From Hypanus sabinus (Eukaryota): a DNA stretch of 64,000 nucleotides. The notes beneath the pieces are model-generated. The model made no database searches. It saw only the letters and a list, made by a program, of their open reading frames with translations, and had not been told where the DNA came from. The stretch lies in assembly GCF_030144855.1 (NCBI RefSeq), contig NC_082712.1, forward strand, positions 121,334,001 through 121,398,000, given 5' to 3'. This document shows, piece by piece, positions 13,903 to 40,450 of the stretch; positions within the stretch are counted from its first letter, which is position 1; every line of letters starts with the position of its first letter. The translations under genes and the position numbers were made by a program.

Positions 13903-14171
13903 GGCTGGCTGATGGCCACATAGTGGCATCAGCGCTGGACTTTGGGGTGAGAGGTCCTGAGTTCGAATCCGGCTGACTCCCTTGCCTGCTCTCCATCCGT
14001 GCCTGGGTTTTTCAACTTCATAAAAAAAAAACTGGAGCGGGATGGGCTCCACCAGGTTTCAGATGGCCAAGACACACTGTACAATGAGCAATCACCAAAA
14101 AGATTGTCATGCAAAAAACTTTTCATGACGGCGCCCTGACTCCTCCGCCAGGAGTTAAGGGCAAGGGCACG

Positions 14172-14247
<76 letters not shown>
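13903..14247 (+). mobile_element. tRNA-headed SINE, tail type 1 ending in (AC)n
   Basis: A-box-like tggc..tagtgg, B box gagttcgaatcc, core ccatccgtgcctgggtt, long (AC)n tail; TSD caatcacatt/cagtcacatt. Confidence 0.85.
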
Positions 14248-14251
<4 letters not shown>

Positions 14252-14747
14252 CACATTAAAAGTTTGTCATTTTTATTAGCCATTGCTGCCCTGGGAAAAT
14301 ACTCTGGCCGTCCACTCTATCTATGCCTCTTATCATCTTATACATCTCTGTCAAGTTGCCTCACATCCTCCTTTGCTTCATAGAGAAAAGCCCTAGTTCA
14401 CTCAAACTTTATTCATAAGACATGTTCTCTAATACAGGCAGCATCCTAGTAAATCTCCAATGCACCCTTTACAAAGCCTCCACACCCTTTATACAATGAA
14501 GCAACCAGAAGTAAACACAATACTTCAAGTGTGTTCTAACTAAGGTTTTATAGGGCTGCAATATTACCACACATCTCTTAATCACAATCCCTTGACTAAC
14601 CATATGCCTTCTTAACCATCTTATCAGCTTGCATAGCAACTATGGGGGACTTGGACCCCAAGATCCCTGTCTTCATACACATTGCTTAGAAGACATTAGC
14701 TTTGTATTCTGCCATCAAGTTTGACCTTCTGAAGTGATACTATTCTC

Positions 14748-15138
14748 TTTCTTTCTTTTTCAATCTTTTTATTGAATTTCATATATATAAAAAAAACATA
14801 ACATAATAATGAATAGGTTATAAGTGCACTAGACGAAGTTGAATTAATAATAAGATAACAATATCCTATTAAAATATCGACAAAAAAAGTACATTAATCA
14901 ATCAAACCTATAATAATTATACATGAAAGAGTAAGAATAATCATCAAAAGAAAAAAAATTTTTAAAAATACAAAAAAAAATATATATTGGAAAAAAAAAT
15001 AAAAACTAAACTAAACTAACATGGGCAATAATAACAGTTTATATGTATATGATAGTGTCAAAAACTCCGGAACTCCATACCAGAACAAGAATAAACAGAG
15101 AGAAGGTCTGGAAGAGGCCAAATTAATTCATATGAAAA
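14748..15138 (-). mobile_element. 5'-truncated L1-type LINE 3' end
   Basis: Exact 17-bp TSD gaagtgatactattctc (14731-14747, 15139-15155); the minus strand ends AATAAAAAGATTG plus an A-rich tail, after a T-rich 3'UTR that follows FHMN*. Confidence 0.75.
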
Positions 15139-17351
15139 GAAGTGATACTATTCTCGTGGCCAATGAGGAGGCAAAGGTTATCACAAATTGTTCAATGATC
15201 TCTTCCCTTGCTTTCCATAATAACATGGCAAATATCCCATCTAGCCAGAGGAACTTATTTATCCTAATAGATAGGAGAAGGGTTGATGTGCCAGATAGCT
15301 TAATTCCACTTCTGTGTCTTTTGGCCTAATGATTTTCAAAAATTCCAACACATTCTCTTTCTTAATTTCGATGTGTTCCAGCACATTAGTCTGTTCTACA
15401 CTGACCTCAAATTCATCCAGATCTCTTTCAATGGTAAATACTGAAACAAAGCATTCAATAAGTACCTCCCCTACCTCATCCAACTGCAGGTATATGTTTC
15501 CTCTTCTATCCCTGATTGGCCGTACCCTTTCTCCAGTCATCCTCTGGTTCTTCACTTATGTATAGAACACCTTGGGGTTTTCCTTAATCCTACTTGCCAA
15601 TGGTTTCTCATGTCCTCTTCTAGCTCCTCTAATTCCCTTTTTATGCTCCATCCTGGTTACATTATAAATCTTGTGCACTGTTGAATATTTGCTTCTTAAA
15701 CCTTGAGTATGTTTCCTTCTTCCTCCTAACTAAATGCTCCAGCTCTCTTGTCAACCGTGGTTACTGCACCATATCACCCTTTCCCTGCCTCAGTGGGTCA
15801 AAGCCCAGTGCCCAAATTTGCTGTGTGGTTCAAAGCAGCTGGCACAGTAGATACTACAAAATGACACCATCGTAACTGCTCCAGGAAAGATGGTTCAGAT
15901 CTGCATGTTATGCTGCTGCCTCATAAGTCAACTGTAACTTTAGAGTGAAATCTGGATTCCATGCAAGTTTACAAAAGGATTTTGACTGGGTTTGGGATGC
16001 TGAATGCCAAAGTAGCATTGCTGATGTTGACTTGCAGTAAACTGCTTATTTTGTGTCAGTCCAATGACCTGTGCCCTCATTAATATGCACCCAACTTATT
16101 TTTGTGCACAAATGAATGGGTGCCTGAGATCTATAACCTGGAGCTCCTTCTCCCTTAGAAATTCCAATATTTTTCCCTGCTATGTTTTGTACATATGGAG
16201 TCATTCAGTTAAGGGTGCAATGAAAATGATTTGTGATGAGCATTATTAGAATGTTGTTCTTGTGTGGTAACTTGCACTGAGGCTGAGAGCAACTGGTTAC
16301 CAGAGTTTAAGGATTAGATACAGTTCATTACAAAACAAAATGAAGGTTGGCAAGGATTTTTTTTTGTGCACGTCCAAGCTCCTTAAATAATCTCTCAGAT
16401 GAACTTTCCTGCCTCTGCAAGGACTTGAAATCTCTAAAGGAGAGTGATTCTTAACTGAATGACACAGGTTAACCTGGAGCCAGCTCCTGTCAGTTTGGCA
16501 AAAGAAACATTCTCATCTTGCAGGACTTAGACTCTGTAGTATGCAATTATTTCTTTGTAATTTTCCAAAAAGTTCCCAGCAAGATCTGCGAGAACGGATA
16601 GTTTATGGTACAAAAGCAATGAAGTTTATTTTAAATATGAAACGAAACTAATCACTTGTCAAAAGCAGCCAATTGGCAAATACCCATGACCAATGTCTTT
16701 AATTTCCCAGAATATCTGATTCATTCTAGTCAAGGAGCAATAACTATCTCCTGGCAGTGAAGCTCTTTTTTTAATTCAGATAGTGCCGGCTTTAATGCAC
16801 TCATTCAGTCCAAAGTAAGATGCAGTAGCAATGAACAGGTGTTTTACTAAAATTAGCTAAATCTTGAGATGGGATTTTTATCTTAACTTATTGACAGTTA
16901 TCTCTTGTTAGTCCACTTTTTGCCCACATTTGCTCCTATTGTCCAGTACCAATCAGGTAAGACAGTGCCTGATTTGTATGAGAATTTAGTAACAAACACT
17001 CTTGCAAAAAAATCTAATACATTTTTTAATATCTGTTATTCATATTTGTTACATTTAATGATTCTGAAAACATGTATTTGATTTTTTGGAAATCAATGAG
17101 GAGAATCACAGGGCACTATACACTTGGCCTTTCTAAATATAGTCTGACTATCATTTAGTTATATGCTTCTTATAAATTCTGATAAATTTTAGTTGTATGC
17201 ATCTGATACGCTACTGATAAATAAATAGGATGCTTGCTGTATCCTGGACAATATAAATCTCCAGCCAATGTAATGAAAAGAGATACAGGAAACTCTGGTG
17301 GTGCTGATTTGGCAAATTTTCCATTCTTTTGGATACTATTCCTATTGTGGA

Positions 17352-17535
17352 TGTGAAACCGGGCCCTGATGAGTTTAAAGAGAATGTGTGAAATGGGTCT
17401 TGGTGAGTTTAAAGGAAGTGAAAAAGATCTCAGTGAGTTTAAAAGGAGTGTGTGAAATAAACACTGGGTAACTTTAAAGGGAGTGTATAAAACAGATCCC
17501 GCTGAACTGAAAGGAAGCTTGTGAAATTGGCACAA
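17352..17535. repeat. Degenerate ~30-35-bp minisatellite, ~5 units
   Basis: Recurring tgagtttaaaggaagtgtgtgaaa-like unit. Confidence 0.7.
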
Positions 17536-18072
17536 CTAAGTCTAAACAGGGCACTGATGTGTTTCAACGGAGCACCAGTTAGTCAAATTTGGAACCATCA
17601 GAACCTCAGAACAATGGATATCAGATTATTAGAGTTCTGAAATCGTCCTTACCTGTTACAAGAATCTAGAAAATGTTGGAAATACTTAGCAAGCTAGGCG
17701 ACAACTGTCACGAGAGAAGAAGTGTGTTTTGGCTGAAACATTAACTCTGTGTATCTCTCCACAGAAGCTTACTGAAATGCAATTTCTACACTTCACTTCT
17801 TACTTCCAGTTTCCACTACCTGCAGTTTTAGTTCTTTATTTGATTTTTCAAATTGGAATTGGGATAGGCAACGATTCGCACATTTTAAGATGTAGAGAAA
17901 GGCAATGTTGGGAAGTGGTTGTACCTTTTGCAGGGAAGAAAGGCAAAATACGTGGAAGACAAAAATTCAGTGGCAATTGTGTAAAGTAACATAAGCTTAG
18001 TGGAGATGAATATCTGAAACCATGAAAGGGATTTGGAAGAAATGCTAAAAATATGGATTAAGATGGTGAACT

Positions 18073-18273
18073 CACAAACAAGAAAAAATCCGCAGATGCT
18101 GGAAATTCGAACAACATACACAAAATGCTGATGGAACTCAGCAAGCCAGGCAGCATCAATGGAAAAGAGTAGACAGTTGATGTTTCAGGCCGAAACCTGT
18201 CAACTGTTTACTTTTTTCCATAGATGTTGCCTGGCCTGCTGAGTTCCTCCAGCATTTTGTGTGTGTTGGTTGG
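18073..18273. mobile_element. Palindromic Penelope-derived non-autonomous element
   Basis: Long inverted arms around gttgatgtttcaggccgaaacctgtcaac; TSD ttaagatggtgaact/ttaaaatggtgaact. Confidence 0.85.
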
Positions 18274-18289
18274 TTAAAATGGTGAACTG

Positions 18290-20700
18290 CTGAATAACTG
18301 AAGTTGAATTTGAGCTCTAAGGGCTGTAATGTACCTTGTCTGAAGGTTACGTGCCGTTTTGCAAGCTCATTATGAGCCTAGTTGGAACTATGCAGGAGGC
18401 TAGGAGGGACAGGGATGGAGGAATTAGTGTGGAGCAAGTTAGAACATTGAAATAAAGCTGAATATCAGCTCTGGGCGAAACTTGTGGAAATGAGTACCTT
18501 GCAAAGCAGTCTCCCAATCCAAGGGGTTTTCCAAGATGAATGGTGGGCCAGACTTGATAGGCCAAATATAAATGGGCTAATTTATCGGCAGCATGGAGTA
18601 AATGAGGTACTCGAGGAATATAAAGAATGTAAAAAGACTCATAAGAAAGAGATTAGAAAAGCTAAAAGAAGATACGAGGTTGCTTTGGCAAGTAAGGTAA
18701 AGTAAATCCAAAGGGTTTCTACAGCTATATTAATAGCAAAATGATAGTGAGGGATAAAATTGGTCCCTTAGAGGATCAGAGTGGACAGCTATGTGTGGAG
18801 CCAAAAGAGATTGGGGGGGGGGTGGATTTTGAACAATTTCTTTTCTTTCAGTATTCACTAAGGAGAAGGATATTGAATTGTGTAAGGTAAGGGAAACAAG
18901 TAGGAAAGTTATGAAAACTATGACGATTAAAGAAGAGGAAGTGCTGGCGCTTTTAAGAAATATAAAAGTGGATAAATCTCTGGGTCCTGACAGGATTTTC
19001 CCTAGGACCTTGAGGGAAGTTAGTGTAGAAATAGCAGGGGCTCTGACAGAAATATTTCAAATGTCATTAGAGACGGGGATGGTGCCAGAGGGTTGGCATA
19101 TTGCTCATGTTGTTCCATTGTTTAAAAAGGGTTCTAAGAGTAAACTTAGCAGTTATCAGCCTGTAAGTTTGACATCAGTGGTGGATAAATTAATGGAAAG
19201 TATTCTTAGAGATAGTATATATAATTATCTGGATAGACAGGATCTGATTAGGAACAGTCAACATGGAGTTGTGTGTGGAAGGTCATGTTTGACAAATTTT
19301 ATTGAACTTTTCTGAAGAGGTTACAAGGAAAGTTGACGAGGGTAAAGCAGTGGATGTTGTCTATATGGACCAATAAGGCCTTTGACAAGGTTCCACATGG
19401 AAGGTTAGTTAGGAAGGTTCAATCTTTAGGTGTTAATATTGAAGTAGCAAAATGGATTCAACTGTGGCTGGATGGGAGATGCCAGAGTGTTGTGGTGGAT
19501 AACTATCTGTAGGTTGGAGACCGGTGACTAGTGGTGTGCCTCAGGGTCTGTATTGGGTCCAATGTTGTTTGTCATATACATTAATGATCTGGATGATGGG
19601 GTGGTAAATTGGATTAGTAAATATGCAGATGATACTAAGATTGGTCACGTTGTGGATAATGAAGTAGATTTTCAAAGCTTGCAGAAAGATTTAGGTCAGT
19701 TAGAAAGATGGCAGATGGAATTTAATGCTGATAAGTGTGAGGTACTACATTTTGGTAGGAATAATCCAAATAGGACATACATGGTAAATTCATTGAAGAA
19801 TGCAGTAGAACAGAGTGATTTAGGAATAATTGTGCATAGTTCCCTGAAGTTGGAATCTCATATGGATAGGGTGGTGAAGAAAGCTTTTGGTATGCTGGCC
19901 TTTATAATTTAGAGCATTGAGTATAGGAGTTGGGATGTAATGTTAAAATTGTACAAGGCATTGGTAAGGCCAGATTTGGAGTATTGTATACAGTTCTGGT
20001 CACCGAATTATAGGAAAGATGTCAACAAAATAGAGAGGGTACAGAGGAGATTTACTAGAATGTTACCTGGGTTTCAGCACCTAAGTTACAGAGAAAGGTT
20101 GAACAAGTGAAGTCTTTATTCTTTGAAGCATAGAAGGTTGAGGTATTTAAAATTATGAGGGGGATAGATGGAGTTGACATTGATAGGATTTTTCCATTGA
20201 GAGTAGGGGAGATTCAGACAAGAGGACATGAGTTGAGAGTTAGGGGGCAAAAGTTTAGGGGTAACACGAGGGGGAAGTTCTTTACTCAGAGAATGGTAGC
20301 TGTGTGGAACGAGCTTCCAGTAGAAGTAGTAGAGGCAGGTTCGATATTCCCATTTGAAGTAAAATTGGATAGGTATATGGACAGGAAAGGAATGGAGGGT
20401 TATGAGCTGAGTGCAGGTCGGTGGGACTAGGTGAGAGTAAGTGTTTGGCACGGACTAGAAGGGCCAAGATGGCCTGTTTCCGTGCTGTAATTGTTATATG
20501 GTTATAATCCTACTCCTATGTCTTATGATCTTATGGTCTTCCCCAATGTAAAGGAGCCCCACATCGTGAGATGCAAATGAAAGATACTAAATTTATAAAG
20601 GTGCTAGTAAATCTCTGCTTCATGTGTAAATAATTGCTGGTATGACGGTAGGAGGTAAAAAGCACAGGTGTTGCATCTGTCATGTTTGTTCAGAAAAATG
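18290..20700 (-). mobile_element. Old Penelope-like GIY-YIG remnant split by a CR1 insertion (pieces ~18290-18560 and ~20540-20700)
   Basis: Weak colinear similarity to 48520-48900 (gcaaagcagtctcccaatc; ccccaatgtaaaggagccccacatcg). Confidence 0.45.
18577..20505 (+). mobile_element. CR1 LINE ORF2 reverse transcriptase (3' ~1.9 kb; stops and frameshifts)
   Basis: DKSLGPDRIFPRTLRE, YQPVSLTSVV, GRSCLTN, LFVIYINDL, KYADDTK, FNADKCEVLHFG, RTRGH-like and FFTQR...WNELP motifs; CR1 3'UTR. Confidence 0.95.
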
Positions 20701-22229
20701 CTGTAAACAATTTTGTAAGAAAATGATTGTATTTTAAATTGGGAAGATTATTGATATTGAGCCATTTCGCCAGAATCTACATCTTATTGGTGATGATTGA
20801 TTACATGCTGTGGTTCACTTTTGGTTGTTTCTAAATGTGTACCTTGTTGTTGATTAGTTCTGAGAATGAGCTGCTTTATGCTTTCATGTTGAAGAGGACA
20901 AGGAACATAACAATGTGGTATGTACCCTGTTGTTGAAAGAAAGGATTGTCAGAAAGGATATGAGAGAAGTACTGGATAGATGTGTGGTTTGTCTACTGTT
21001 GAATGATAGATTGGCGACAGTAGCGTTAGTCTACAAAAGTGTTTGTGTGTCCTCCTATTTATTATTTGCCATACAGTAATAGAAAAGTATAAGAGGTGAT
21101 GAGAAAAATGTTGAGCTTTCTTCACACTTAAACTATTCCAGGAAATATGTCAGATTTACTAAAATTTTGTAGGTGATCAAGTACCTTGAGCCTGTCAGAA
21201 TTGTGTGCCGTGTCTGAAGAGCATGCCTCAACTGACATTGGACACCTTTTAATTTAAGCTGAGTGACAGCTTGTTTGAAGTACCAGCTTGGCTGAGGAAT
21301 TTCCATTGCAAGAAAAAGATGGTGAGAGTGACTGCTGCACTGTATAACAGTATTTATAATATTGGATAGTGGTGTCCAAGGAGGATATTTGAAAAACAAT
21401 GTGTTTATTGTGAAAATATCAAATTCAGTGCATCTCAAACAATTCTAAGCCTGGGAGTGTGATTTTTTTCAATAGGAAAGATCTCCTGATTGAAGTGAAA
21501 GCTTCAATCGTAAGTTGATTTGTTTCTAACTTCTGTAGCAAGCTACAGACAGGTCCTTGAAGCACTTCATCAATATCTGTCTCTTGTGTGTTAAACGCAT
21601 TAAAATGTCCAGAAATTGGAAGTGTGCAGTAAAGAGTACTATGCACTTATCAGGACAAAGCCAGCTTGCTCTAGCATTCCTTATAGCATTGTTGGTTAGA
21701 AAGTTTGGAGCAAATATTTGACGTGAACTCTTCATACAGTTGAAACAATAAATAATGGAGAGGATTCACTTTGCATGAGATCATTAGAGTTCGAACTGTT
21801 TTTAAGACATGCCAACAAATGCTATAAAATATTAGCTTCCAAATTGCCTCTGACCACCAATTCTAAATTCCAAAGGGTTAGCATAGTTGAATTTCATTTG
21901 GTTGTCTTTGTGTAGCTAAATAGAGTATATATACAGAAGAATATCATTCAGCGTCATTGCCTTTGGTCCATAACCAAATGCTAGTATGTTATATCCTATG
22001 ATAATTTTTGCCAAAGAAAATCGTCCATTCAGCAAACACTGAAACTAGTGCCATAAGCATTTTTCGGGCTAGAGGAAGGTTGGGGAGGGGGGATAATAAA
22101 ATCTTAATTTGTTTATTAACAACATTGTGGGAGGAGCTTTAACATTCATCCCCCTCCAAGTCTACAGAAATCCAATGATGTAGCTCACCAACGGCCAGTC
22201 AAGGGAAATTATGGATGGATGATTCATCA

Positions 22230-22510
22230 TCAAAGTCCAGTTTATTATCATATGCACAGGTGCAATGAAAAATTGTAACAATATCACAGACACTTAATAT
22301 CAGATAAGCAGAATTCACAAGAAGACATACATTCTACACAATACTTACAAGAAAATATAATTTGAACAAAAAGAAGTCCATTTTAGTGCCAACTGGTTGA
22401 CGCGGTCGTAGTGTTTGTTAGTGTACTTGATGACAAGCTGTACTTCCTTAACCTCTTAAGAAAGTAAAGCTGCTGGTAAGCTTTCCTTATGACTGAATCT
22501 ATGTGCTGGG
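22230..22510 (-). mobile_element. Rex1/Babar-type 3' tail, decayed
   Basis: caaagtccagtttattatcatatgcacagg...aagctgtacttc pattern. Confidence 0.5.
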
Positions 22511-22734
22511 CCAATTTCTTCATAGTTTAAACCTTGCCATTCTGGTAAATCTGTGTAGGCTTACCTCCAGATCATTGTTTTTTCTTTAAGTGTTCATTAC
22601 TGCTTAAGGTTCTTAATAAAGCTGTTAAATAAGTTCTGCCTTCTTGCATTCTAATCCTCCTGATAACAAGACCGAGATTTTAACATACTATTTGAGTATA
22701 CAGTATATCAGTCCATGACATTTTCCTGGCATTA

Positions 22735-22960
22735 CGTTATTACAGTGCCAATGACTCAGGTTCAATTCTGCCACTGCCTGTAAGGAGTTTGTACATTCTC
22801 CCCATGACTACACGGATTTCCTTTGGGTGCTCCGGTTTCCTCCCACATTCCACAGACAAATGGTTAGCAGGTTAATTGGTCACATGAGCACAACTGGGTT
22901 ATACAGCTTGTTGTGCTAGAAGGGCCTGTTACCATGCTGATTCTTGATAAAAATAAAATA
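22735..22960 (+). mobile_element. V-SINE (HE1-like)
   Basis: B box ggttcaattc, V domain ggagtttgtacattctcccc...gggtgctccggtttcctcccaca, CR1-like tail gaagggcctgtt and an A-rich end. Confidence 0.85.
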
Positions 22961-23199
22961 ATTTAATTTCAGCTTCCACCATTTGGAAAGTGTCCTGTTT
23001 AGCCCTTGGAAATTCATTTGCTAGAGTCTTGCTCATCCACTTAATCTATTGAAAGCTCTTTTTAAATTGATAGCCCTGGTCATGTTGGTTGGACTCATTT
23101 AGGTGCCTCTTTTTCTTGCGATCTGGATTATTTATAAATAGTGGCCCTGACATAGGGGCACTTCTAGTAACATCTCACTAGTTTGTGTCTGCTATTGTC

Positions 23200-23930
23200 C
23201 TTTTTCTTGATATCCTTGACTTTGGTGAAGCTGGATGCAAATTGGAGGACTACTTTGCTGAGCACATCACTCTGTCCACCGTGCCAGCCAGGATAGCCTG
23301 GTAGCCAGAATTTTCAATTCCATTTCACATTCCCACACTGACATGGCTGCCTCCACTCCCAGATCAAGACCAAATGAAAATGAGAGGAGCAGTACCTCAT
23401 GTTCTCCCTGGGCAGTCTCCAACCTGGTGCTATAAACATTGGATTCTCAAACTTCTAGCAACTACTCCGCCTGTACCTTTTCCCCTATTCTTCCTTTTTT
23501 TCTTCCTTTTTTACTCTCCTGCTGATCAACTGGCCTCCATCACCCTGTGTCTTTCCTCCCTCTCCCCAAACTCTCCTTCTTCATCTGTCCATCACCTAGA
23601 TACTCTTCGCATTGCTCCCTCTCCCCCTACCTCCTCTGCATTCTATGTTTCATCTTCCTCTCCGACCAGCTGCAGCTTTTTATTACTTCCATCTCTCACT
23701 TCCCAGCTTCTGATATCATTCCCACCCACATCCGCCTATCAACACCCCACCCTACCCAGCTGGGTCCACCTAACTCCTGTCAACTCTTGCTCCACTCCTT
23801 TTCCCATCTTTTCATACTGACTATCTCTCCCACCTCCTTCCAGTTCAAGCGAATGGTCCAGACCTCAGTTGTCCATAGATGCCTGGCTCGCTGAGTTCCT
23901 CCAGCACCTTGTGTTTTGCTCTTGATTTCC
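23200..23930 (+). mobile_element. Penelope-like element 3' part, decayed
   Basis: GIY-YIG C-terminal remnant (ctgggcagtctccaacct), pyrimidine-rich UTR and the ctgagttcctccagca arm. Confidence 0.75.
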
Positions 23931-25069
23931 TGCTACTGACCTTGGAAAAACTGTGAGTTCAATTTTGGTTGAGAAGGACTTCATCAAATTGATTCTGAAT
24001 GTACAAATAAATAAATTACCAAATTAATCAGCAGAGCAACAGGGCCTTCAAGCCCACGAGCCCCGCTACAGCTGTTTTGCTTGAATTGGCCTTTGAATTT
24101 GTGAAGACCCAATTTATATTTATGATCTTTATTTTAGTCTTCCCCCCCCCCCAAAAAAAAAAGTGGAAACATTTTCTCTCCTGCTATTTCAGGATCTTAA
24201 AAATATGAGCAAGTCCTGAACTGATTGCTTTCCCTTCTCAGGCTGTGTGGTTGTTCAGCCTATCCTGATGAGGAAAGCCTGCTGCAAGAATTTTGTCACA
24301 TCCGTCTATAAAACAACATAAGTGTGTGATTGGCAGCTGCGAAATCAGTTGTGATCTTTAATTAAAGGTGTGAAAGTCTATACTACTGTGCCCTGAAGTT
24401 AACCCTGGATGGAGTCTGCCGAATGCACCGCAGCACAGCTTTTGCAATAACAGAACTGTCTCAGGAGGTCATTTGAATATTGCCTCTCAGAAATGATGGT
24501 ACGAATGGATGGACAGATGAAAGCCAAAAGGAGGGGGATTAGAACCTATGAGAATGGAACAGGACACTGTGTACCTTCTTAACCAATCATGTTGAAGAAT
24601 CAGTGAATGCGTGATGCAGATGGGATCAGGAAGTGCAAGATGAAATATTGAATGTCACAGCATAACAGCTGCAAAAAGTGAAAAAAATGAAAATAATTCT
24701 AGCATATCTTCAACAGTAATTTAATCCAAAGAAATGTTAACTTTCATTATCAAATATGGGAGTAATTAAGAGTTACGTTTATTGCTAAAAATTTAATTAG
24801 AGTCTGGCAGGCAAGCTTTTTTTCATAACGTTACATAAGTTTTATAAGCATAAATATAACAACTCCAATGTATGTCATGGACAAGATAATGCAGCTACTG
24901 GAGATGCAAGGAATGTTGTCCTGTAAATATTGGATTCCTTCCATGAATTACACGTGTGTGATTGCAGTTTCTGCCTAATTTACATTTGAGAAGTAGTGAA
25001 TATTGTGGTTTTGCCAGTGTATTAATCACAGAAACCAGCCCAATCTTCGGTTAAAAAGACTTGTTCATA

Positions 25070-25385
25070 TTCAGATTAGTTTATTGTCGTAACACCAGCG
25101 TGCCAAGAAATTCCTTGCTGGCCCTGAAGTTCACAGAGTATATCGTACGCAGGGCAATAAAGAATGCAATAAAAACGGTGACGAACAGAAACAAGATAGT
25201 GTAAACTGAATGCTAAAGAGTAGACAACAGATTAACAGCTTAACGGAGTAAAAGAGAGAGGTAGAATTAAGGGACCTAGGAAGTGGCTGCACCATCGGGA
25301 AGGGGTTGTGAAAGAGGTGATGGCTGCGAAGTCTTATAGCAGCGAGGGAGAAGCTGCTCTTCAATCTGGTCACCCAGGTATTCAA
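25070..25385 (-). mobile_element. Rex1/Babar-type 3' tail
   Basis: Minus ORF TRLKSSFSLAAIRL, typical of the end of the Rex/Babar ORF; ends agtttattgtc. Confidence 0.6.
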
Positions 25386-26632: not shown

Positions 26633-26679
26633 TCCATATTCTCATGAGCTCCCTCCAGATTCCTACCCCCAGGGCAAGT

Positions 26680-28720: not shown

Positions 28721-28819
28721 TCTTAATCACAAGTGATTATGGAAATACCGCTGTCACATGCAAACAGCTAGTTGGAGCAACAGGTGAAAGTGGTTCATTT
28801 ACAGTCAATCAAAGCATAC

Positions 28820-29070
28820 AGTAGGTGAATTCACCCATCAATAACTACTCGGAATTAATACACTGTTTTATAGAACTGTAGAGGTATTGGTACTCTTCTA
28901 GTTTGTTCTGTATGCCATTTAAATGCATAAATTGTTAGTCAGTTAAATAGCACTTTGTCTTTTTTATACGTTTTAGCTATTTCCATGAAACTTTGGTTAA
29001 TTGGGCAGTGGCTTAATTGGGTCAAAATGTACTGTTCTTGATGTATCTCAATTAACAGTAATTTAATGTA
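28820..29070. mobile_element. Possible old Tigger-like MITE end
   Basis: Repeated ttaattggg and terminal tctcaattaacagtaatttaatgta, resembling a decayed Tigger TIR. Confidence 0.35.
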
Positions 29071-29086
29071 TCTGTATCTGTGTGTA

Positions 29087-30092
29087 CAGGCAGTCCCCGG
29101 GTTACGTACGAATTCCGTCTTTAAGTCGGATTTGTACGTAAGTCAGAACAAGTACATCTGGTATTATTTAGAGTCAGTCAGTCAAATGTTTGTTTTAGTA
29201 TATAGTATATATTTTACCTTTCTATGCATATAAAACACTTAAGAAACGTATGTATTCCAATAATTAAACCACTGCGTTGTTTAGTAATAATTGTAGCTTT
29301 CATCGGGGCAGGGCCTTTCCCACGCTCCATTATTCTCACTTTATCCGTTATCCTTTAAAATTGTTCCGGTTGTTGGCCGACTGTAGCCTAACGCTTTTCC
29401 AATGACCGATGGCGTTTCATCTCTTTCCAAATGCTTTATTATTTCCACTTTATTTTCAATCGTGATCACTTCCCATCAATGGAACAGAAACACTGTGGGC
29501 GGCGGGTCCTGACCTGCGCTGGCTGCCAAGGTCCGCTGGGTCCTAAGGACCACTGCACTGAATTCATCGGGTCCTAAAGTACACCACACCGAGCCAGGTT
29601 AAATGGGGCAAGTGGGGGCTGTGCTGGGTTTGGGTATTTGCTCCTCCACAATATTCCACGTGGCAATTTAAACTGGAGGTGGCAGTGTTTTTTTACGAGG
29701 TCGAGTTGCGAGCTCGACATCAACCCGGCATGGATGGTACGTGAGTCACTGGACTGACGTCAACCCGGCACAGGAGCGGTCTGTCACTAAATCGAACTTG
29801 GGAACCTCCGCTCTCGAGCCCAGCGCTGATCTCACTGCGCCATCAGCCAATCGGAATGTGGGGGGGGGGGGGGTCAGGGTGAATCTTGCTAAAAAAATTT
29901 AAAACAACTACAAAGTTAAACACAACACAGTGTCAACGGCAACAACTTAAAATAGTGGACGGTGTCGCGACCGGACTTAAAACGGCGGACAGCGTCGCGA
30001 TCTGACTTTAAATGGTGGACAGCGTTCTCCTTCCTCGGTTCATAAATATGAGCTGTCCGTAAGTCGGATGTTCGTAACTCGGGGACTACCTG
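29087..30092. mobile_element. Tigger/pogo (Tc1-mariner) non-autonomous DNA transposon, 1006 bp
   Basis: TIRs CAGGCAGTCCCCGGGTTACG / CGTAACTCGGGGACTACCTG; TA on both sides; subterminal TAAGTCGGA repeats. Confidence 0.9.
29600..29852 (-). mobile_element. tRNA-headed SINE (same head and core family) inside the Tigger-like MITE
   Basis: Minus strand reads ggctgatggcgcagtg..agttcgattt..ccatccatgccgggttgatgtcgagctcgcaactcgacctcgtaaaa; the 3' boundary is uncertain. Confidence 0.75.
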
Positions 30093-30298
30093 TATATACA
30101 TATAAACTGCTCAGCCTTTTCACTGCTGATCTCTCAATAGTGTGTGTTCACTCAGCTTCCCCTTCAAGCCCACAATCAAATCCTTGGTCTTACTGACGTT
30201 GACAGCAAGGTGGTTGTTGTTACACCACTCAACTAGCTGATATATCCCATTCTTGTATGTCTCATCGTCACCATATGAGATTCTGCCAGAGTTCTGTC

Positions 30299-30987
30299 TG
30301 TAGCCTCATGGTAAGCCTCAGGCTCGCTCAGCTCACTTTCGTCTAGTGGGAGCAGCCTTCGGCCCCGCCAAACTGTGTAAACAACTTTGTGTAGATGCTG
30401 TGTGATGTACCCCACCACGCCAAATATCAGACAGTACACCATATGCGATTAAATGATTACACTTTATAACTCTTACTTTGACAATGTTGATAGTAAATGA
30501 ACAAAATAAGAAGTATTTAACTGTTTAAAAAGAGGAAAAAGGCACCATTAGTATTAAGCAGTTTGTGCACACATCGTTGGAGCTCTTACAGAACTGGGTC
30601 TCCCTTCCTCCAGTTGATGTCCTCTGATCTCCGCCGACCTATGAATGGGACCATCCTTGTTGATCGACCAAACGTTCTACTCGAGTCTGTCCATGTCTCC
30701 TCTCCTTGCCAAAGACCCAAGGCCTTGGACTCCCACTTGGGTCCGATCCTCGCCCAGCTTACAGCATCTCTCTCATCGCGCCTTCTCCCCAAAGCCCACG
30801 AAAAACAATAGCCTACAGACACACAAGAAAGAATAACATCTATCTCAATTGGTTAGCAAATGAATACAATTCCCGTTATCAGTAATTATAACCCGAACAA
30901 GCTGCTACCGTTAACTCAACAGTTAACATTACAAAGAAGCCATTTTATTAGTCTTAGCAAATAACATGAAAGAAGTAACCCCTTACA
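30299..30987 (-). mobile_element. Solo LTR (Gypsy-like family A), 689 bp
   Basis: TGTAG...CTTACA termini and an exact 4-bp TSD tgtc (30295-30298, 30988-30991). Confidence 0.9.
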
Positions 30988-32074
30988 TGTCATTGGCAAA
31001 TAGATGCTGTTTGAGCTGTGCCTAGCCACACAGTCGTGGGTTTAGAGAGAATAGGGCAGTGGGGAAGCATATATCCTTGAGGTGCAGCAGTGTTGATTGT
31101 CAGAGAGGAGGAGATATTATTTCTGATCTGCACTGATTGTTGTCTCCCGATGAGGAAGTTAACAATCTATTTGCAGAGGGAGATATAGAGACCCAGGTTA
31201 CAAAGCTTGTTGATTAGTACTGAAATTATGATGCTGTTGAATATTGATCTGTAATTAATAAACTCCAGCCTGACATAGTTATTGTCGTTGTCCAAGTGGT
31301 CGAAGGCTGAGTGGAGAACCAGTGAGATTGCATCTGCTGTAGACCTATTGTGGCAGTAAGCAAATTCAAGCAGGACCAGGTCCTTGCTTAGGCAGGAGTT
31401 GATTCTGATCATAACTAAACTTTCAAAGCACTGCATCACAGTAGATGTGAGTGCAATTGGGTGATAATCATTGAGGCAGCTCACCCTGCTCTTGCTGGGA
31501 ACTGGTATGATTGATGTCCTTTTGAAGCAGGTGAGAATCTCCAAATGCAACAGTGAGAGATGGAAGGTGTCCTTGAACACTCCTGCCAGATGGTTGGATA
31601 AGTTTTCAGTGTCCTACCAGGTACTCCATTGGAGCCTGAAGCCTTGTGAGGGTTCATCCTCTTGAAAGAAGTCCTGACATTTGCCTCTGAGAGAGAGATC
31701 ACAGGGGCACCAGATGCTGCAGGGATTTGCCCAGGTGTTGTTTTATTCTCCCTTTCAAAGTCTACATAAAATGCAATGAACTCATCTGGGAGTGGAGGAT
31801 CACAGCTATTTATGATGTTAGGTTTTTCCTTGTAGGACCTGCAAATTATGACCTGCAAATCTTCAAATCTTGCCAGGGCTGATGTGTATCTGCTTCTGTC
31901 GCTAACTTTGAATGGAATGGTTTATTTGCTCTTAAAATATCCTTCTGTAGGTCATACCTGAACTTCTTGTCTTGTTCTGTATCACTGATCTTGAATGCCA
32001 CAGATCTAGCCCCCAGCAGACTGTGAATCTCCAGGTTCATCCAGGGTTTCCGGGTTGGGTATGTCCAGTAAGTT

Positions 32075-32675
32075 AGAAACATAGAAACTTTTAAAACCTA
32101 CAGCACAACACAGGCCCTTCAACCCAAAAGCTGTGCTGAACATGTCCTTACCTTAGAAATTACCTAGGGTTACCCTTAGCCCTCTAGTTTTCGAAGCTCC
32201 ATGTACCTATTCAGGAGTCTCTTAAAAGACTCTAACGTTTCTGCCTCCACCACCGTCGCTGGCCGCCCCTTCCATGCACTCACCACTCTCTGCGTAAAAA
32301 AAAAACTTACCCCTGACATCCCCTCTGCACCTACTTCCAAGCACCTTAAAACTATGCCCTCTTGTTCTAGCCATTTCAGCCTTGGGAAATCCAAGGCTTG
32401 GGATAGCCTCTGACTATCCACATGATCAATACCTCATATCATCTTATACACCTCTATCAGGTCACCTCTCATCCTCTGTCGCTCCAAGGAGAAAAGACCG
32501 AGTTCACTCAACCTATTCTCATAAGGCATGCTCCCCAATCCAGGCAACATCCTTGTAAATCTCCTCTGCACCCTTTCTATGGCTTCCACATACTTCCTGT
32601 AGTGAGGCGACCAGAATTGAGCACAGTACTCCAAGTGGGGTCTGACCAGGGTCCCATATAGCTGCAACATTACCT
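32075..32675 (-). mobile_element. CR1 LINE 3' end, relatively young
   Basis: LYGTLVRPHLEYCAQFWSPHYRK, RMRGDLIEVYK and FFTQRVVSAW motifs; agaaacatagaaac tail. Confidence 0.93.
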
Positions 32676-33923
32676 CTCAAATGTACACACTTATCGGCAC
32701 AGATCTTGATGAAGACAATGACAACTGTGGCATATTCATTCAGATCCAAACCTGAATCCTTTAATATTGTCCAGTCCACCAATTTAAAGCAGTCCTATAA
32801 GTGCTCCTCCACCTCCCTTGACCATATCTTTGTGGTCCTCACCACTGGTGCGGTGGTCCTCAGTCTCTGCCTGTATTCTAGGAGTAGAAGTACAGCCAGG
32901 CTTGCCTCTTGCCTCATAGTCCAGGCGTGAGATAGCACAGTAGGTGTTCTTGATTGTGGAGTAACATTGGTCAAGTGTGTTGGCTGCACTGGTTCCGCAG
33001 GTGATATGCTAGTAGCAGATGGTAAGAGACTCCTTCAAGCTAGTCTAGTTGAAATCCCCAACCATGCTTGAAAGGCATCAGGGTACACTTTTCCTGACTG
33101 CTGATAATGGTGATCCGTTCCTCCAGTGTCTGCCTGACAATGGCAGAGATGGAATGTATGCTGTTACCAGGATGATAATAGAAAACTCCCTTGGCAGATA
33201 AAATAGACAACATTTGAGCACTAAATTTTCCAAGTTGGGTGACCAGGACTGAGACAGAACCCCCATGTCTGTACACTATGATGAGTTAATCTGGGCACTC
33301 TCCATCTCCTTTACCTTTAAGAGACTCCACTGTTCTGTCCACAAGGTGGATGGAGAAGCCCTCAGTTGGCAGCACTGTCCAAAATGGTAAGTGTGAGCCA
33401 TGTTGTAGCACTGCCTTTACCCTCCCCCCCCCCCCCACCCACCACACTAAGTAAGTGCACAGTTTGCATCAATTAGTCTCGATGCCGAAACATTCTGTAT
33501 CATCTTGGTAGCTAACTCTCTCCTGTATTACCTATTGAATCTGTTTAGTTCTGTGCACCCGGTAGGCAATCTTAACTGAACAACACCTTTCCTGCTGTTT
33601 AAAGCATGCACTTTGTGTGACCTTGCAAAGACATTGGTTGGCACTCCACAACGGTAATGGTGTTTTCAGGTTAATAGACATGCATTGGCATCATGACATA
33701 ATGGTCCTTTGGAAATATGTGGCATCTAAAAAAAATCTACATTGCTGCCAGTATATTCAGGCCTTGGATTATAGGCTTGATATTTTATTCCGGCCAATGA
33801 AGGGAATTAACAACAGTATCCATGATTTGTTGGTGAACCTTCTGTATGATTTCTCAAGTGTGACTGGCAGAGAATGCCCTAGCATGATTCCTCCACCCTT
33901 CCCCACTATTACAATGTCTTGCT

Positions 33924-34117
33924 CCAACACACACAAAATACTGGTGGAACGCTGCAGGCCAGGCAGCATCTATAGGAAGAAGTACAGTCGACATTTCGGG
34001 CCGAGACCCAATGTCGATTGTACTTTTTCTTACAGATGCTGCCTGGCCTGCTGCGTTCCACCAGCATTTTGTGTGTGTTGCTTGAATTTCCAGCATCTGC
34101 AGATTCCCTCGTGTTTG
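33924..34117. mobile_element. Palindromic Penelope-derived non-autonomous element
   Basis: Inverted arms around a partial hammerhead gtcgacatttcgggccgagaccc; TSD atgtcttgct/atatcttgct. Confidence 0.85.
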
Positions 34118-34441
34118 ATATCTTGCTACATCTAGCTGAAAGGTGCAGTAATCATTCCTGCAAGTAGTCAACAGGTTAGAGGAAGAAGGCAGGAGAAGAG
34201 GGTTGAGAGGGATAATAAATCAGCCATGACAAAATGGTGGAGCAGACTTGATGGGCTGAATGGCCTAGATATGCTCCTCCATCTTATAGTGTTACGGAGT
34301 TTACCTTTAGCGTTTGTTCTCTTGACACCAGCCCTAGCCCAAGTCTGGTAGGAATGTCCTCCAGGACTCTGCCTAGTCCTTGCAGATGAGCTATTCTTAG
34401 TGATGGACAATAAGGTCCTCCATTCAAAGAACATACTATAT

Positions 34442-35420
34442 CAGGGGTCACCAACCTTTTTTGCACTGCAGACCGGTTTAATATTGACAATATTCTTGCG
34501 GACCGGCGGATGGGGATGGGGGGGGGGGGTGTTAATCACACCCGCAAAATAGGCGATAAGTCAACTATAAGTGACTTATGTGGCTAATACACTCAATTTT
34601 GTTTCTAAAAGGGTTTATCTAATGAATTTAATATTAAACACACAGCACGTATTTTCCTCACATGAATATAGTGATAAGTCAATTATAACTCACTTATAAG
34701 TCAGTAACATCATAACATTTTAAGTAACGTTTGGATATTAAACATATATTTTCCTGGTATGAACATATAAAATCATTGCAACACACCAGTGAGAGGACAA
34801 GGTCAGGGCCGGAGGTCCCTGTACCAGGACCGCGGCGGTCGCAGTCTGGAGAGAGCGATTGACCGAGCGAAGAGTGCGACAGGGTGTGTCCCCGCCCCCC
34901 CCCCCCCCCCTTGTAGGTAGGTAGGATCTACTGGCCGACAAAAGTTTGGCTCGAGGGATGACTTTCAGTAGATCACAGTAAGGTAGCTGCTCTGCTACTT
35001 ACGAAACCCTGAGCCCGAATTAGGTCGTCTGCGAATAGTTTAGCACCAGGTTCCCCATGAACATTCGGTGTGCTAAACAAGTTTAGAGGCGGCGCCCATC
35101 TGTCTGCGCTCCAGGTCAGTAGCATCAGCACTTGCCGCCGGCCGTGCGAGGCGGCCGGTTATCCGAGGCCAACCAGTGATTCCCTGGCATGAGGGTATCA
35201 CTGCGTTTATGGGTAATGCATTTATGACTGCGTTTATGACTTCGCGTACGTAATGAACTCGCGTGTGTTCAAGTTCAAAAGTGGGCGTGACAGGGAATGA
35301 GGAAAGGTGCAGCTGACTCATATCGTTTCATATCGACAAATCATATTGTTTCCTTGTGGCACAATAGCACATGCTTTGCTGCCCGGTACCGGTCCGCGGC
35401 CCGGTGGTTGGGGACCACTG
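34442..35420. mobile_element. hAT (Charlie3/MER1-like) non-autonomous DNA transposon, 979 bp
   Basis: TIRs CAGGGGTCACCAACC / GGTTGGGGACCACTG; subterminal ccggtaccggtccgcggccc; 8-bp TSD tactatat/tgctctat (6/8). Confidence 0.85.
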
Positions 35421-35999
35421 TGCTCTATGCTTATCCTTGGTGCACATACCAAATGGGACTGAGCATAGAGGAGCACTGATACCTCAGCCACAGAAACTGG
35501 GTCACCTGGAGAATTGAGCCCTGCAATGGCTGTGCCATTATTATATAAACATCATGTGCTGGTTACCATCTTAGCCATGAACACTGGTTTAGAATTAGAA
35601 GGGAACCCGCAGAAGCTGAAAAAAGGTATGCTACTTCCTTAATCTTCCTTTTCAACATTGATTTTTGTTTTCATGGAAATTGACTTTTCATTTGGCCTTC
35701 ACAATTATAAAAAGGAGGAAAGTCCTTCATCATATTTAGCTGATTTAAGAAAAAATTTAGACTTTTAATTTGTCCACCTCTTGGTAATTGTTATGCACTA
35801 ATACAAATAATAGACAATCTTTGTTAGTACTTGACACAAATCCTATTTTCAACAAGGTCTAAATAGCTGCAATGATTGTTGATGGTTATTATTAACTAAT
35901 TCACATTAAGAAGATCCCCACTTCAATTGACCTCTGTCAGCATTGATGCTAGGATCTTCTTGTTGCCTCAGGTAAACGTAGTGGTTCATTTACTCCTTT

Positions 36000-36130
36000 T
36001 TAATTGGCTGCTACCTATTTGCTTACAAAAATAGTGACTGCACTTCAGAAGTAATTTGTCTGTCTGAAGTGGTTTTAGGAAGCTCTGAAGAAAAGAATAT
36101 TTCATTAAAATTAAGCTTTTTATTTCTTTG
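36000..36130 (+). mobile_element. Deu-SINE/L2-like 3' tail remnant
   Basis: aattggctgc...agtgactgcacttcagaagtaattt. Confidence 0.5.
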
Positions 36131-36421
36131 TTTTGCAATTTTAGCCAGGTGACACAGACTATGATCTTATTTATTTATCAGTTAGGTATTTCTATTTATA
36201 AATAGATTTGCTTTTGTTGTATCTAAGCAAAAGGTTTATAATACCCAGTGGATAAAATGCAGGTCAACAGAACATTTGATTATCACACATTAGGCTTCTT
36301 GCCTTCAGAAGTGCTTTCAATGTCTGCCTTTTTAATGTTTGAAATGCATTACTACCCTGAAGTCATGAAGTTAATCAGTATCCAAATGGTATCTATCCTG
36401 CATGTTGTCATCAATTGTAAA

Positions 36422-36620
36422 CACGAGGAAATCTGCAGATGCTGGAAATTCAAGCAACACACACAAAATGCTGGTGGAACGCAGCAGGCCAGGCAGCTTC
36501 TATAAGGAGAAGCTCTGTCAACGCTGACGAAGGGTCTCGGCCCGAAACATCGACAGCGCTTCTCTCTATAGATACTGCCTGGCCTGCTGTGTTCCACCAG
36601 CATTTTGTGTGTGTTGCATG
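36422..36620. mobile_element. Palindromic Penelope-derived non-autonomous element
   Basis: Inverted arms; hammerhead core ctgacgaagggtctcggcccgaaacatcgac (36524-36554); TSD tcaattgtaaa. Confidence 0.88.
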
Positions 36621-36944
36621 TCAATTGTAAATGTTTTTTATACCCACCCTTTGAGTTTAGGCCATCTGGGTGAAATAAACCAGCACAATCCAGAACCTAT
36701 TAAAACTGAGCAATAACCACAAGCAAAATAGTATAAATATTATCACTATAACTAACATGACATATGATATGAACTATGATGTAAAATACTATAATTTTGT
36801 ACCAATGTGACCTCTGTACACAGTACCTCAAACAGCTTTAACCCTTTAACCTGTGACATACACTGACAAATGCCTCTCGCTGACTCTGTAAATCAACTGA
36901 TTCTATAAGTAAGGTGAATGAACACTGTTCTTTTTTTTTTACCA

Positions 36945-37900
36945 GAGATAGGGAATCAAAAACTGGGGTCAAAACTTTAAGATGAAAGGGGAAAAATTAA
37001 AAGAGGACCTGAGGGGCAACCTCTTCATACAAAGTGTGGTACATATAGGAAGCAAACTGCCAGATGAAGTGTTTGAGGCAGATACATTATACTTAAAAGA
37101 CACTTGGACATGTATATGAATAGGGAAGTTTCAGAAGGATTTGGGCGAAACACAGGCAAATGGGACTAACTTAAATAGGCACTTTAATTGGCATGGATGA
37201 GTTTGGCCGAAGGGCTTGATTCTGTGCAGTATAACCTGACGACTCCATGACTCTACCTGAGAAGGGAGTGAGTAATTTAGACCTGTATTCTCCAGAGTTC
37301 TACAAAAGTGGGAAGAGATCCCTTTGAAGCTTATGACATGCTCCTGGAGTCAAAAGGCTGAATCCAGGATGTTTCTGCTGACTGGGGAATACAGACCAAA
37401 GGATCGCAGTGTCAGAAATAACGGGCAGGCTGTTTAGAGTGCAGGGCCAAATTCTTCACTCAGAGTATTGTGTGTTATTGGAACTCTCCACCAGTGAGTA
37501 CTGTGAAGCTCAATCGTTGTATTGATTAAACCCAAGAGCAATAATTTTCTAGATTTAAAAGGAATCAAGGGTTATGGGAAGCCGGCTGGTGGCACAGTGG
37601 CATCAGCACCGGACTCTGGAGCGAAGGCTCCCGAGTTCGAACCCAGTCAGCCCCACCCCCATGGGGCATGCTTTCCATCCGTGCTGGGTTGAGCATCGAG
37701 CTAGCCTCTTGGCCTCATAAAAAAAAGACATGGGTTGAGTCAGAAACGTTTATACCATGACCAATCCTGACACCATGCGCCGGACAAGAATGGCTGACTG
37801 TCTGGTGTGACAAGCTATGAAATGAAATGAAGGGTTATGGGAATAGTGCAGGAACAATGGCACTGAAGTCAATCTGCTGTGATCTTCATGGATGGAGAGA
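36945..37900 (+). mobile_element. Two adjacent CR1 3' ends; the second carries the SINE insertion
   Basis: gaggggcaacctcttcatacaaag and ttcttcactcagagtattg motifs; CR1 3'UTR gccgaagggc. Confidence 0.7.
37581..37829 (+). mobile_element. tRNA-headed SINE, tail type 2 ending in (TGAAA)n
   Basis: A box tggcacagtgg, B box gagttcgaaccc, core ccatccgtgctgggttgagcatcgagc; exact 14-bp TSD aagggttatgggaa. Confidence 0.9.
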
Positions 37901-38239
37901 AAGATAATCAAATATTCTGTTGACCTGCATTTTATCTACTAGGCATTATAAATCTTTGGTGACAGACATAGTGTAGAAGCTCAGGGAGAGAAGCTTAAAT
38001 TTACATTTATAGTTTCTTGATTTCCCCACGGCCTGCAGCCTGTTTGTAAAGTTCAGTGCAGGACCCTTTCAGTTCCTTATGGCAGGATGGGATGGAATTT
38101 TCAGACAATTTTGGTTCACGACAGGTTAAGATTACTTGCTTAAGGTACCTGACCATAGATCTCACAAATATCTGACAATGAAAGAACAAATGAATGGAGG
38201 TAGTGAGTACAGGTCCAGATCCATCAAACTCTTCTCTTA

Positions 38240-38540
38240 CTCTTTACATATTTGAAAAAAAAACTTCTGGTATCCTCTTTGATATTATTGACTAGCTTAC
38301 CTTCATATTTTCACGTTTCCCTTCTTAAGGCATTTTAGTTGCCTTCTGTTGGTTTTTAAAAGTTTCCCAATCCTCTAACTTCCCACTAATTTTTGTTCTG
38401 TTATATGCCCTCTCTTTTGCTTTCATGTTGGAATTGAATTCCCTTGTCAGCCACAGAAATATCATTGCGCCTTTAGGATACTTATTCTTTTTTGGGATGT
38501 ATCTATTCTGCATCTTCTGAATTACTCCCAGAAACTCCAG
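38240..38540 (-). mobile_element. CR1 ORF2 fragment
   Basis: QNRYIPKK...WLTREF...KAKERAYN...LEDWETFKNQQKATK. Confidence 0.8.
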
Positions 38541-39679
38541 CAGGACTGTCAACTAACAACTCTGTAACAAACTAAAAACTAACATCATCACTGTGGCTCA
38601 AAAGCACTTACCTAAATCTAAATCAATACCGTTCCTTTAACAGCATCTAATTAAATAACTAATCTTCTCTCCCAGAATGTGGACTAAGATAAGCAGGAAG
38701 CATTGTCATTGCTGTGCTTCAATCAAGTCTTGATTAGACTGAGGCAAAAGGAAGAGAATTAACTACAATTACAAACAAAAAGCCCTAATTGGCAGGAACG
38801 TGTACATTCACCCTTGCATGATCACCGGTATCTTTCAGCTGCTCACCTGTGAGAGTGCCCATATTCCGCGGCAGTGTCTGCATTGATCTCCGTACTAACT
38901 CATTAGTCATTGGCAGTATTTGATTTCTGCAAATGTATACATTCACCTCAAGGAGCTCAGAAGAATAGAGGGCTATGGGTAACCCTAGGTAATTTCTGAA
39001 GTGCAGGTTCAGTACGGCATTGTGGGCTGAAGGGCTTGTATTGTGCTGTAGGTTTTCTATGTTTCTATGTTACTATATGTCAAGGGGGAAAAAAAAACAA
39101 TGAATGTTGTTTTCTCTCCATTTTCAAATCCAGCCTTTGATAAGAGTTATATAAAATGATACTTTATTTGTATTTGACTCAATATTCAGTTGCCATCCGG
39201 TCATGGAATATTATAGAGACTGCATTTTGCTTTGTTTTTTTTTGTCATATTTGAACATCTGTCCATCAGTTAGGAAGTGCCGCTCTGCTGAATTCCAATC
39301 TTCTAATCATCATTATTTTTGCAGTGTGTGCGACATTACAGATGTTTATCCCTCTCATGCACCTCATCAAGCTGTTGTGCTTGCATTCAATTCTCTTATC
39401 TCTAATATTATAATCCTTACAAGCCACATTGGAATTATTACCCATATGAGTTAACTTACAGACTTGCTCAATATTTAGATTATCTTTGTTTTTAACTTGT
39501 CTTTCATTCTGTTAACACACTTAAACTAGCTTTGTTTAGTCTGTCGAAACGTTAATAGTGAAAACTTGCAATGTGGTTTGGCTAAAAAATCTATTTTTGT
39601 TTTCATTCTGTAATGCTAAGTGTGTAGTTATGTGATTGAGAGAGCAAAAGAGTGATTTGCTCATGGATCAGTAGATCAT

Positions 39680-40450
39680 TAGGAGTTTGAGGAGATTTGG
39701 TTTGTCACCTAAAGCACTTGAAAACTTCTACAGATGTACTGTGGAGAGCATTCTGACAGGTTGTATCACCATCTGGTATGAGCATTCTGACAGGCTGTAT
39801 CATCGTCTGATATAGAGGGAGTGGGGGGAGATCTACTGCACAGGATCATAATAAGAGAGTTGTAAGATTAGTCAGCTCCATCGTGGGTGCTAGCCTCTGT
39901 AGTATCTAAGACATCTTAAAGAAGCAGTGCCTCAGAAAAATGGCTTCTATCATCAAAGGCCACCATCACCCATGACATACCTTCTTCTTATTATTTCTAT
40001 TAGAAAGGAGGTACAGAAGCCTGAAGGCACACATTCAGTGATTCAGGAACATTTTCTTCCCCTCTGCCATCCAAGTCCTGAATGGGCATTGAATCCATGA
40101 ACTCTACCTCACTACTTAATTTTAGTTTCAGTTTTTTGCACTACCATTCTTCAGTATGGCTTGTTTCTCAGTGACATCAGCACTGAACTCTGGAATGGAG
40201 GTTCTTGGGTTTGAATCCAGTCAGGCCGTTCCCGAGTACGCTTTCCATCCGTGCCAAGTTGAGTGTCGAGCTCGCAACTTGACCTCGTAAAATAAAGAAA
40301 AATACTGCGAAATGTCTGTGTGAGGAGTGGCATGCCACACAGTCTTTCATTCTGCGCCTTGTAAGGCATGAAAATGCCTGACGTTGGCCTCTCAGGCCTG
40401 AGTCAACGTCATCATCATTCTTCATTTAACTATTTAATATATTTGTTTAC
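39680..40450 (+). mobile_element. Rex1/Babar 3' end with nested SINE
   Basis: aacttctacagatgtactgtggagagcattctgacagg...aggaggtacagaagcctgaag. Confidence 0.8.
40154..40415 (+). mobile_element. tRNA-headed SINE, tail type 3 ending in a stem-loop and (CAT)n
   Basis: B box gggtttgaatcc; core ccatccgtgccaagttgagtgtcgagctcgcaacttgacctcgtaaaa; TSD cattcttca (40145-40153, 40416-40424). Confidence 0.88.

Follow-up and report, generated by a model that had tools for sequence, protein, structure and literature searches.

Short interspersed elements (SINEs) carry 3' tails that derive from the 3' ends of their partner long interspersed elements (LINEs), with both a hairpin and a terminal repeat being needed for recognition (PMC3747384). 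Variable tails, joined to a head and central domain that are conserved, and switching of the partner LINE are described for the CORE-, V-, Deu-, Ceph- and MetaSINEs (PMC4824008; SINEBase, PMC3531059), with template switching having been proposed as the process of tail exchange in the case of the MetaSINEs (PMC4824008). Here, a SINE family found in a 64,000-nucleotide stretch of the genome of the ray Hypanus sabinus (contig NC_082712.1, positions 121,334,001 to 121,398,000; hereafter referred to as the window and numbered from its first letter) is considered. Like the superfamilies listed above, the ray family presents a tRNA-derived, RNA polymerase III (Pol III)-type head that is directly followed by a conserved body and variable 3' tails. 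Compared by description only, it is unlike them in that its body is known from one ray genome and close relatives, and in that the joint between body and tail is a distinct A-run.

Other described systems also come close. The HCD-tRNA SINEs of bivalves make use of four or more LINE clades, with the CR1-Zenon, Nimb, L2 and CR1 partners being recognized by homologies of 35-61 bp (PMC11481361). As in the ray family, the same head and domain are there joined, within one clade, to several unrelated tails (the 'mosaic' scenario), yet whereas partners were identified for the bivalve elements, none of the LINE 3' ends of the window matches the ray tails. In chondrichthyans, CmiSINE comprises a tRNA-Ala head, a CORE body and an L2-2_CM tail, SacSINE1 belongs to the Deu group and HE1 is a V-SINE associated with the HER1 LINE (PMC5499810; table in PMC3747384), with CmiSINE and SacSINE1-CM sharing one tail (PMC5499810). 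The ray family is likewise a tRNA-derived element of a cartilaginous fish, built of a head, a body and a tail of putative LINE origin, and in both cases modules are shared between elements. Again by description, CmiSINE and SacSINE1 combine different heads and bodies with one tail, whereas the ray family combines one head and body with different tails. Finally, UnaL2 ends in a 3' hairpin followed by (TGTAA)n and, together with UnaSINE, shows stringent 3'-end recognition (reviewed in PMC3747384). The ray tails similarly offer a hairpin and then a short tandem repeat, here (ATGAA)3, (CAT)2-3 or (AC)36, but present neither a match to the Rfam UnaL2 model nor a LINE counterpart in the window.

Retention of the head and core together with a change of LINE partner is thus on record in PMC4824008, PMC11481361 and PMC5499810, such that the partner swapping proposed in an earlier note on this DNA restates a known principle. 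The ray family repeats that published principle and is a mosaic of an ordinary, already understood kind. When head and core motifs were sought in the text of the literature, only coincidences with primers were obtained, the relevant papers printing no consensus letters; a search of metagenome contigs for core patterns yielded 0 matches, which says little.

The analysis presented below points to a single SINE lineage that probably kept a head and body of ~150 nt, with its subfamilies carrying different 3' modules. At least two tail classes exist, and one further copy probably represents a third subfamily. Were this to hold true genome-wide, it would provide an example, from a vertebrate, of several LINE lineages of the same genome being parasitised by a single SINE head and body, and the fixed, recognizable joint at the A-run might be of use in testing whether tails are exchanged by template switching. 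The main present use lies in the repeat annotation of ray genomes.

Four copies share one 5' module

Four copies of the SINE were identified in the window, namely c1 (13903-14249), c2 (37581-37829; 249 nt) and c3 (40154-40415; 262 nt) on the forward strand, and c4 (29688-29852) on the reverse strand. Common to all four is a 5' module of ~150 nt that comprises Pol III A and B boxes, a variable linker, a core of ~50 nt and an A-run. The core body reads TTTCCATCCGTGCC, followed by a hairpin and then by CTCGTAAAA, and the units, 249-347 nt in length, are non-coding. Comparison of the copies with one another by blastn gave E values of 1e-5 to 1e-20 and identities of 72-88%, with the links being confined to the first ~150 nt. 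When a profile of the shared part was run against the window with nhmmer (--max), only c1-c4 appeared below E=1, and neither blastn (word size 7) nor nhmmer (--max) revealed extra copies or tail relatives within the window. In this manner, blastn, nhmmer and alignment agree with the earlier note that head and core are common to the four copies.

In c2, the head (37581 to ~37655, with the A box at +10 and the B box at +55) is followed by a variable linker (~37656-37669), the core (37670-37718), the A-run (37719-37726) and a tail (37727-37829) that contains a 10-bp hairpin at ~37777-37808 and terminates in (ATGAA)x3. In c3, a decayed head (40154 to ~40230) and a core with a 6-bp hairpin (40236-40288) lead into an interrupted A-run that makes up the A-rich joint (40289-40303), and from there into a tail (40304-40415) that contains three hairpins, with the terminal (CAT/ATC)2-3 directly following the third. 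The head of c1 (13903 to ~13985) precedes a core remnant (~13990-14021), the A-run (14022-14031), the tail (14032-14176) and (AC)36 (14177-14249). As previously remarked, the core of this copy is partly deleted; the ~15 nt that it lacks correspond to a deletion that creates a TTTTT. In c4, read on the reverse strand, the head begins at ~29852/29848, the start of the core is partly duplicated internally (~29774-29745), and the core itself (~29744-29695) is followed by the A-run (29694-29688). The window as a whole presents a GC content of 41% and a CpG observed/expected ratio of 0.26, as in CpG-depleted vertebrate DNA. The four copies are likely to be old, inactive members of a single SINE lineage that is tRNA-derived and of the Pol III type.

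Promoter elements of the head

In c2 and in the consensus of the four copies, the A box (TGGCACAGTG) is found at +10/11 and the B box (GTTCGAAYC) at +55/56, corresponding to a type 2 Pol III promoter, with the two boxes spaced as in a tRNA and lying close to the 5' end. c1 retains the B box, and in c3 and c4 both boxes have decayed. Inside c2 and c3, T residues never form runs of four or more, which would allow Pol III to transcribe either unit in full; c1 contains two T-runs, one of them arising from the core deletion. Only with very relaxed settings (-ps80) did ARAGORN return matches, in c2 and in the consensus, with inconsistent isotypes. The head is presumably similar to those of MIR-type CORE-SINEs, a likeness that was not used as evidence.

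Tails beyond the A-run are unrelated

Past the A-run, the copies diverge completely, as had been claimed. Pairwise Smith-Waterman scores for the sequences found here in c1-c4 lay at the level of shuffled sequence, with core controls scoring 22-70 against a shuffle mean of ~11.5, and each tail is unique within the window according to blastn and nhmmer. In one of 12 comparisons, the c1 tail matched the c2 tail, read in reverse complement, over 12 nt (score 24, reached by 0/300 shuffles), which was taken as chance.

The tails of c1, c2 and c3 each fold with a hairpin directly before the terminal repeat, this being (AC)36, (ATGAA)3 and (CAT)2-3, respectively. Of the tail ends listed in the earlier note, the (AC)n of c1 was borne out, whereas '(TGAAA)n' is better described as (ATGAA)x3 and '(CAT)n' comes down to 2-3 units only that overlap the flanking duplication of c3. 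The fourth tail that had been assigned to c4 was not confirmed, as the A-run is followed (from 29687 downwards) by unrelated, decayed sequence with no terminal repeat, no target-site duplication (TSD) and no definable 3' end. Only three tails, those of c1, c2 and c3, are therefore real among the four copies. Searching the window and the copies with Rfam (gathering threshold and E<=10) for UnaL2 or other structured RNAs yielded no match beyond noise. The statement that the tails match none of the CR1 or Rex ends of the window was upheld, in that blastn and nhmmer revealed no similarity to any LINE fragment there.

The extent of tail diversity within so short a region had been called unusual. 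Assuming 6-10 equally common classes, however, four random copies would all differ in 28-50% of cases and, with only three of the tails being real, the claim of unusual diversity is not supported.

c2 and c3 moved as whole units

The boundaries of c2 are set by a TSD of 14 bases (AAGGGTTATGGGAA), exact at 14/14 positions, with copies at 37567-37580 and 37830-37843, the repeat depth considered below dropping to single-copy level from the start of the latter. c3 lies between exact 9/9 copies of CATTCTTCA (40145-40153 and 40416-40424). The putative TSD of c1 (13893-13902 and 14248-14257) agrees at 9/10 positions, seven of which form an exact stretch (13896-13902 and 14251-14257), and no TSD was found for c4. 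In 20,000 null trials in which random pairs were drawn in the window, with both boundaries fixed within 3 nt, an exact TSD arose by chance in 0.4% of cases for 7 bases, in 0.025% for 9 bases and in 0.01% for 14 bases. Accordingly, of the TSDs of 10, 14 and 9 bp with which three of the copies had been credited, those of c2 and c3 stand, whereas that of c1 amounts to only 7 exact bases, or to 10 with one mismatch. Because the TSDs enclose the entire unit, c2 and c3 were each mobilised as a whole head-core-tail unit, as had been maintained for every chimera.

Repetition in the genome was addressed using Logan contigs from four public runs (organism labels A-D), aligned to positions 37429-40428 at 80% likeness and hence covering c2 and c3. 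Depth here denotes k-mer depths summed over contigs rather than a number of copies, and is given for run X1, with means taken over bins of 100 nt. Across unique flanks and spacers (37429-37528, 37829-37928 and 39129-39628), mean depth was 0.5-8, with two unique flanks at 7.9 and 7.7. In the three bins of c2 (37529-37628, 37629-37728 and 37729-37828), values of 9,928, 26,955 and 8,066 were obtained, as were values of 1,176, 13,717 and 6,590 in those of c3 (40129-40228, 40229-40328 and 40329-40428). The depth of c2 falls at both ends where the TSD sets its boundaries. Within c2, depth was 240-460 in the head-core linker (37654-37663), ~12,800 in the core (37707) and ~12,400 in the distal tail (37782), the latter position being covered by 99-115 contigs per run (99 in X1). 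The c3 tail, at position 40384, was covered by 87-104 contigs per run (93 in X1). With summed depth reaching 1e3-1e4 times that of the flanks and more than 100 contigs per run, these sequences are dispersed in many copies. In c3 the tail, and in c2 its distal ~60 nt, which include the hairpin and the terminal repeat, are highly repeated, at depths of ~6,600-12,400 in X1 as compared to ~3-8 for unique flanks; neither occurs only once, and past the A-run neither is single-copy flank.

Five other contigs (records 8, 15, 16, 24 and 32), at 82-89% identity, run from the head or core into a c3-type tail, showing the c3-type chimera to be a real subfamily. Contigs of labels A-D (records 1, 9, 10, 17 and 25) also contain the junctions of c2 with its own flanks, such that the c2 insertion predates their divergence.

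These findings bear on the alternative that the real SINE consists of the head, core and A-run, with a poly(A)-type end, and that the rest represents local flank, 3' transduction or read-through. The absence from c4 of both a TSD and anything recognizable after the A-run, the weakness of the c1 TSD, and the position of all four joints at an A-run that resembles a retroposon 3' end are in line with such an origin. Yet the exact TSDs of c2 and c3 enclose the tails and not the A-run, the tail of c3 and the distal part of that of c2 reach about a thousand times the depth of the flanks in ~90-115 contigs per run, and other contigs carry the core together with the c3 tail, all of which renders this alternative improbable.

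A-rich DNA is a favoured LINE target. The composites could thus have been built in place, with 5'-truncated retroposons having inserted into the A-run of resident simple SINEs, in which case the units would never have moved as chimeras. Such nested insertion would account for the tails possessing a hairpin and terminal repeat of their own, and for the first part of the c2 tail showing depths of only 97 (7 contigs) at 37744 and 30 (2 contigs) at 37751, so that 2-7 contigs bridge a core-tail joint at which both sides are abundant. An A-rich duplication would, however, be expected at both ends of the tail, whereas the 14- and 9-bp TSDs lie outside head and tail; moreover, the five contigs mentioned above repeat the c3 arrangement, and three independent hits on the same joint would be called for within 64 kb. 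Nested insertion is accordingly considered very improbable. Given the whole-unit TSDs and the repetition of the tails, nested insertion and plain flank were both rejected for c2 and c3, in favor of a lineage in which different 3' modules are carried by one head and body.

Possible origin of the 3' modules

The central domain is shared by elements bearing different tails, given that the c2-type and c3-type tails are unrelated and each is multi-copy. Each tail may stem from a separate 'stringent' LINE, whose 3' end it would reproduce and whose reverse transcriptase would thereby become accessible to the subfamily. A LINE-type origin is suggested by the resemblance to L2- or CR1-type ends, in which a hairpin likewise immediately precedes a short terminal repeat. 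The ancestral element would have ended at the A-run, and a reverse transcriptase begun on a LINE-type 3' end could then have switched to the transcript of a simpler SINE at its A-rich 3' end. A template switch onto an A-rich end would explain why every joint lies at the same A-run. As for the earlier proposal that tails were swapped at a fixed A-rich joint so as to use different LINEs, an already published principle, it is supported in part by the movement of c2 and c3 as whole units and by the repetition of the c3 tail and of the distal c2 module; no matching LINE 3' end is present in the window.

The exchange may also have run in the other direction, with head and core having been acquired repeatedly by pre-existing, tail-bearing SINE families via recombination or gene conversion. 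The data show mosaicism without direction, and both directions are allowed by the 'mosaic' scenario of PMC11481361. The four copies cannot tell repeated acquisition of the 5' module and tail exchange apart; we nonetheless regard the former as quite unlikely. A more far-reaching version of tail exchange, in which the ~50-nt body and head would constitute a hitherto unrecognized, highly conserved domain in the SINEs of batoids or elasmobranchs, and hence a new superfamily, that used at least three LINE partners in one genome and recombined always at the ancestral 3' A-run, is, taken as a joint proposal, doubtful.

Several observations weigh against the reading of one SINE lineage with exchanged 3' modules. 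The description of the head as 'tRNA-like' holds true for the A and B boxes and their proper spacing, but not for tRNA models: ARAGORN at default settings reported 0 tRNA genes in the window, the Rfam tRNA model (gathering threshold and E<=10) gave no match in the window or in c1, c2 and c3, and the head is as such not recognizable as a tRNA by cloverleaf or tRNA model at default settings. The z-scores of the tail hairpins, at -1.7 to -2.1, are modest, and no LINE 3' end matching any tail was found among the LINE fragments of the window. Template switching at the A-run is something we infer rather than observe. c4 is uninformative, as what follows its A-run cannot be called a tail. The TSD of c1 is not only weak but adjoins the (AC)36 microsatellite. 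Furthermore, CACATT is found shortly before the head in c1 (13897-13902) and again in c4 (29860-29855, reverse strand), a hexamer that may reflect chance or belong to a 5' leader carried by some copies; since it overlaps the putative TSD of c1 and recurs before the c4 head, the case for c1 is somewhat weaker. Lastly, the 35-40 nt right after the A-run of c2 (sampled at 37744-37751) are represented by only the 2-7 contigs referred to above. The joint region of c2 may be fast-evolving; alternatively, c2-type chimeras may form a small subfamily, with most copies of the distal c2 tail residing on elements of other kinds.

Other repeats and features in the window

Several further repeats lie in the vicinity of c2 and c3. 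A CR1-type LINE 3' end is found at 38929-39076, finishing in (TTTCTATG)x2.9 at 39054-39076. This end presents the top depth of the 37429-40428 interval (~4-8.5e5 in X1, as compared to ~5 for unique DNA), far above that of the SINE. A very high-copy repeat at 39629-40128, with depths of 1e5-8e5 in X1, contains a 34-bp tandem duplication (39746-39813) and ends ~25 bp before c3; another, at 38229-38528, reaches a depth of 2.9e5 in the same run. Near c4, a 30-bp tandem repeat in 2.7 copies (29945-30025) is located just upstream of the element, and a decayed, coding-like stretch with stops (29262-29474, reverse strand) is found downstream; judged by eye, this is a putative helix-turn-helix region of a DNA transposon.

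Decayed remnants of LINE reverse transcriptases are seen at 18878-20430 and 61375-62738 on the forward strand and at 31167-31858 on the reverse strand, none of which offers a 3' end resembling the SINE tails. Sub-threshold RVT_1 matches were obtained at 19553-19912 (E 2.5e-5) and 61957-62298 (E 1.2e-3), with the other remnants being judged by eye from translations. A run of 175 N, corresponding to an assembly gap or to masking, occupies positions 3620-3794.

Finally, an open frame of 288 amino acids at 48497-49363 on the reverse strand shows a weak match to GIY-YIG (Pfam E 0.18) and resembles the end of a Penelope-like element. The annotated proteins closest to this frame come from Mobula hypostoma and Hypanus sabinus, with further relatives in Leucoraja, Rhincodon and Chiloscyllium. 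Those of the first two species are annotated within host genes, for example as 'divergent protein kinase domain 1C' isoforms, 'mucin-2' and 'chitinase domain-containing protein 1', and are probably transposon-derived exons or mis-annotations.

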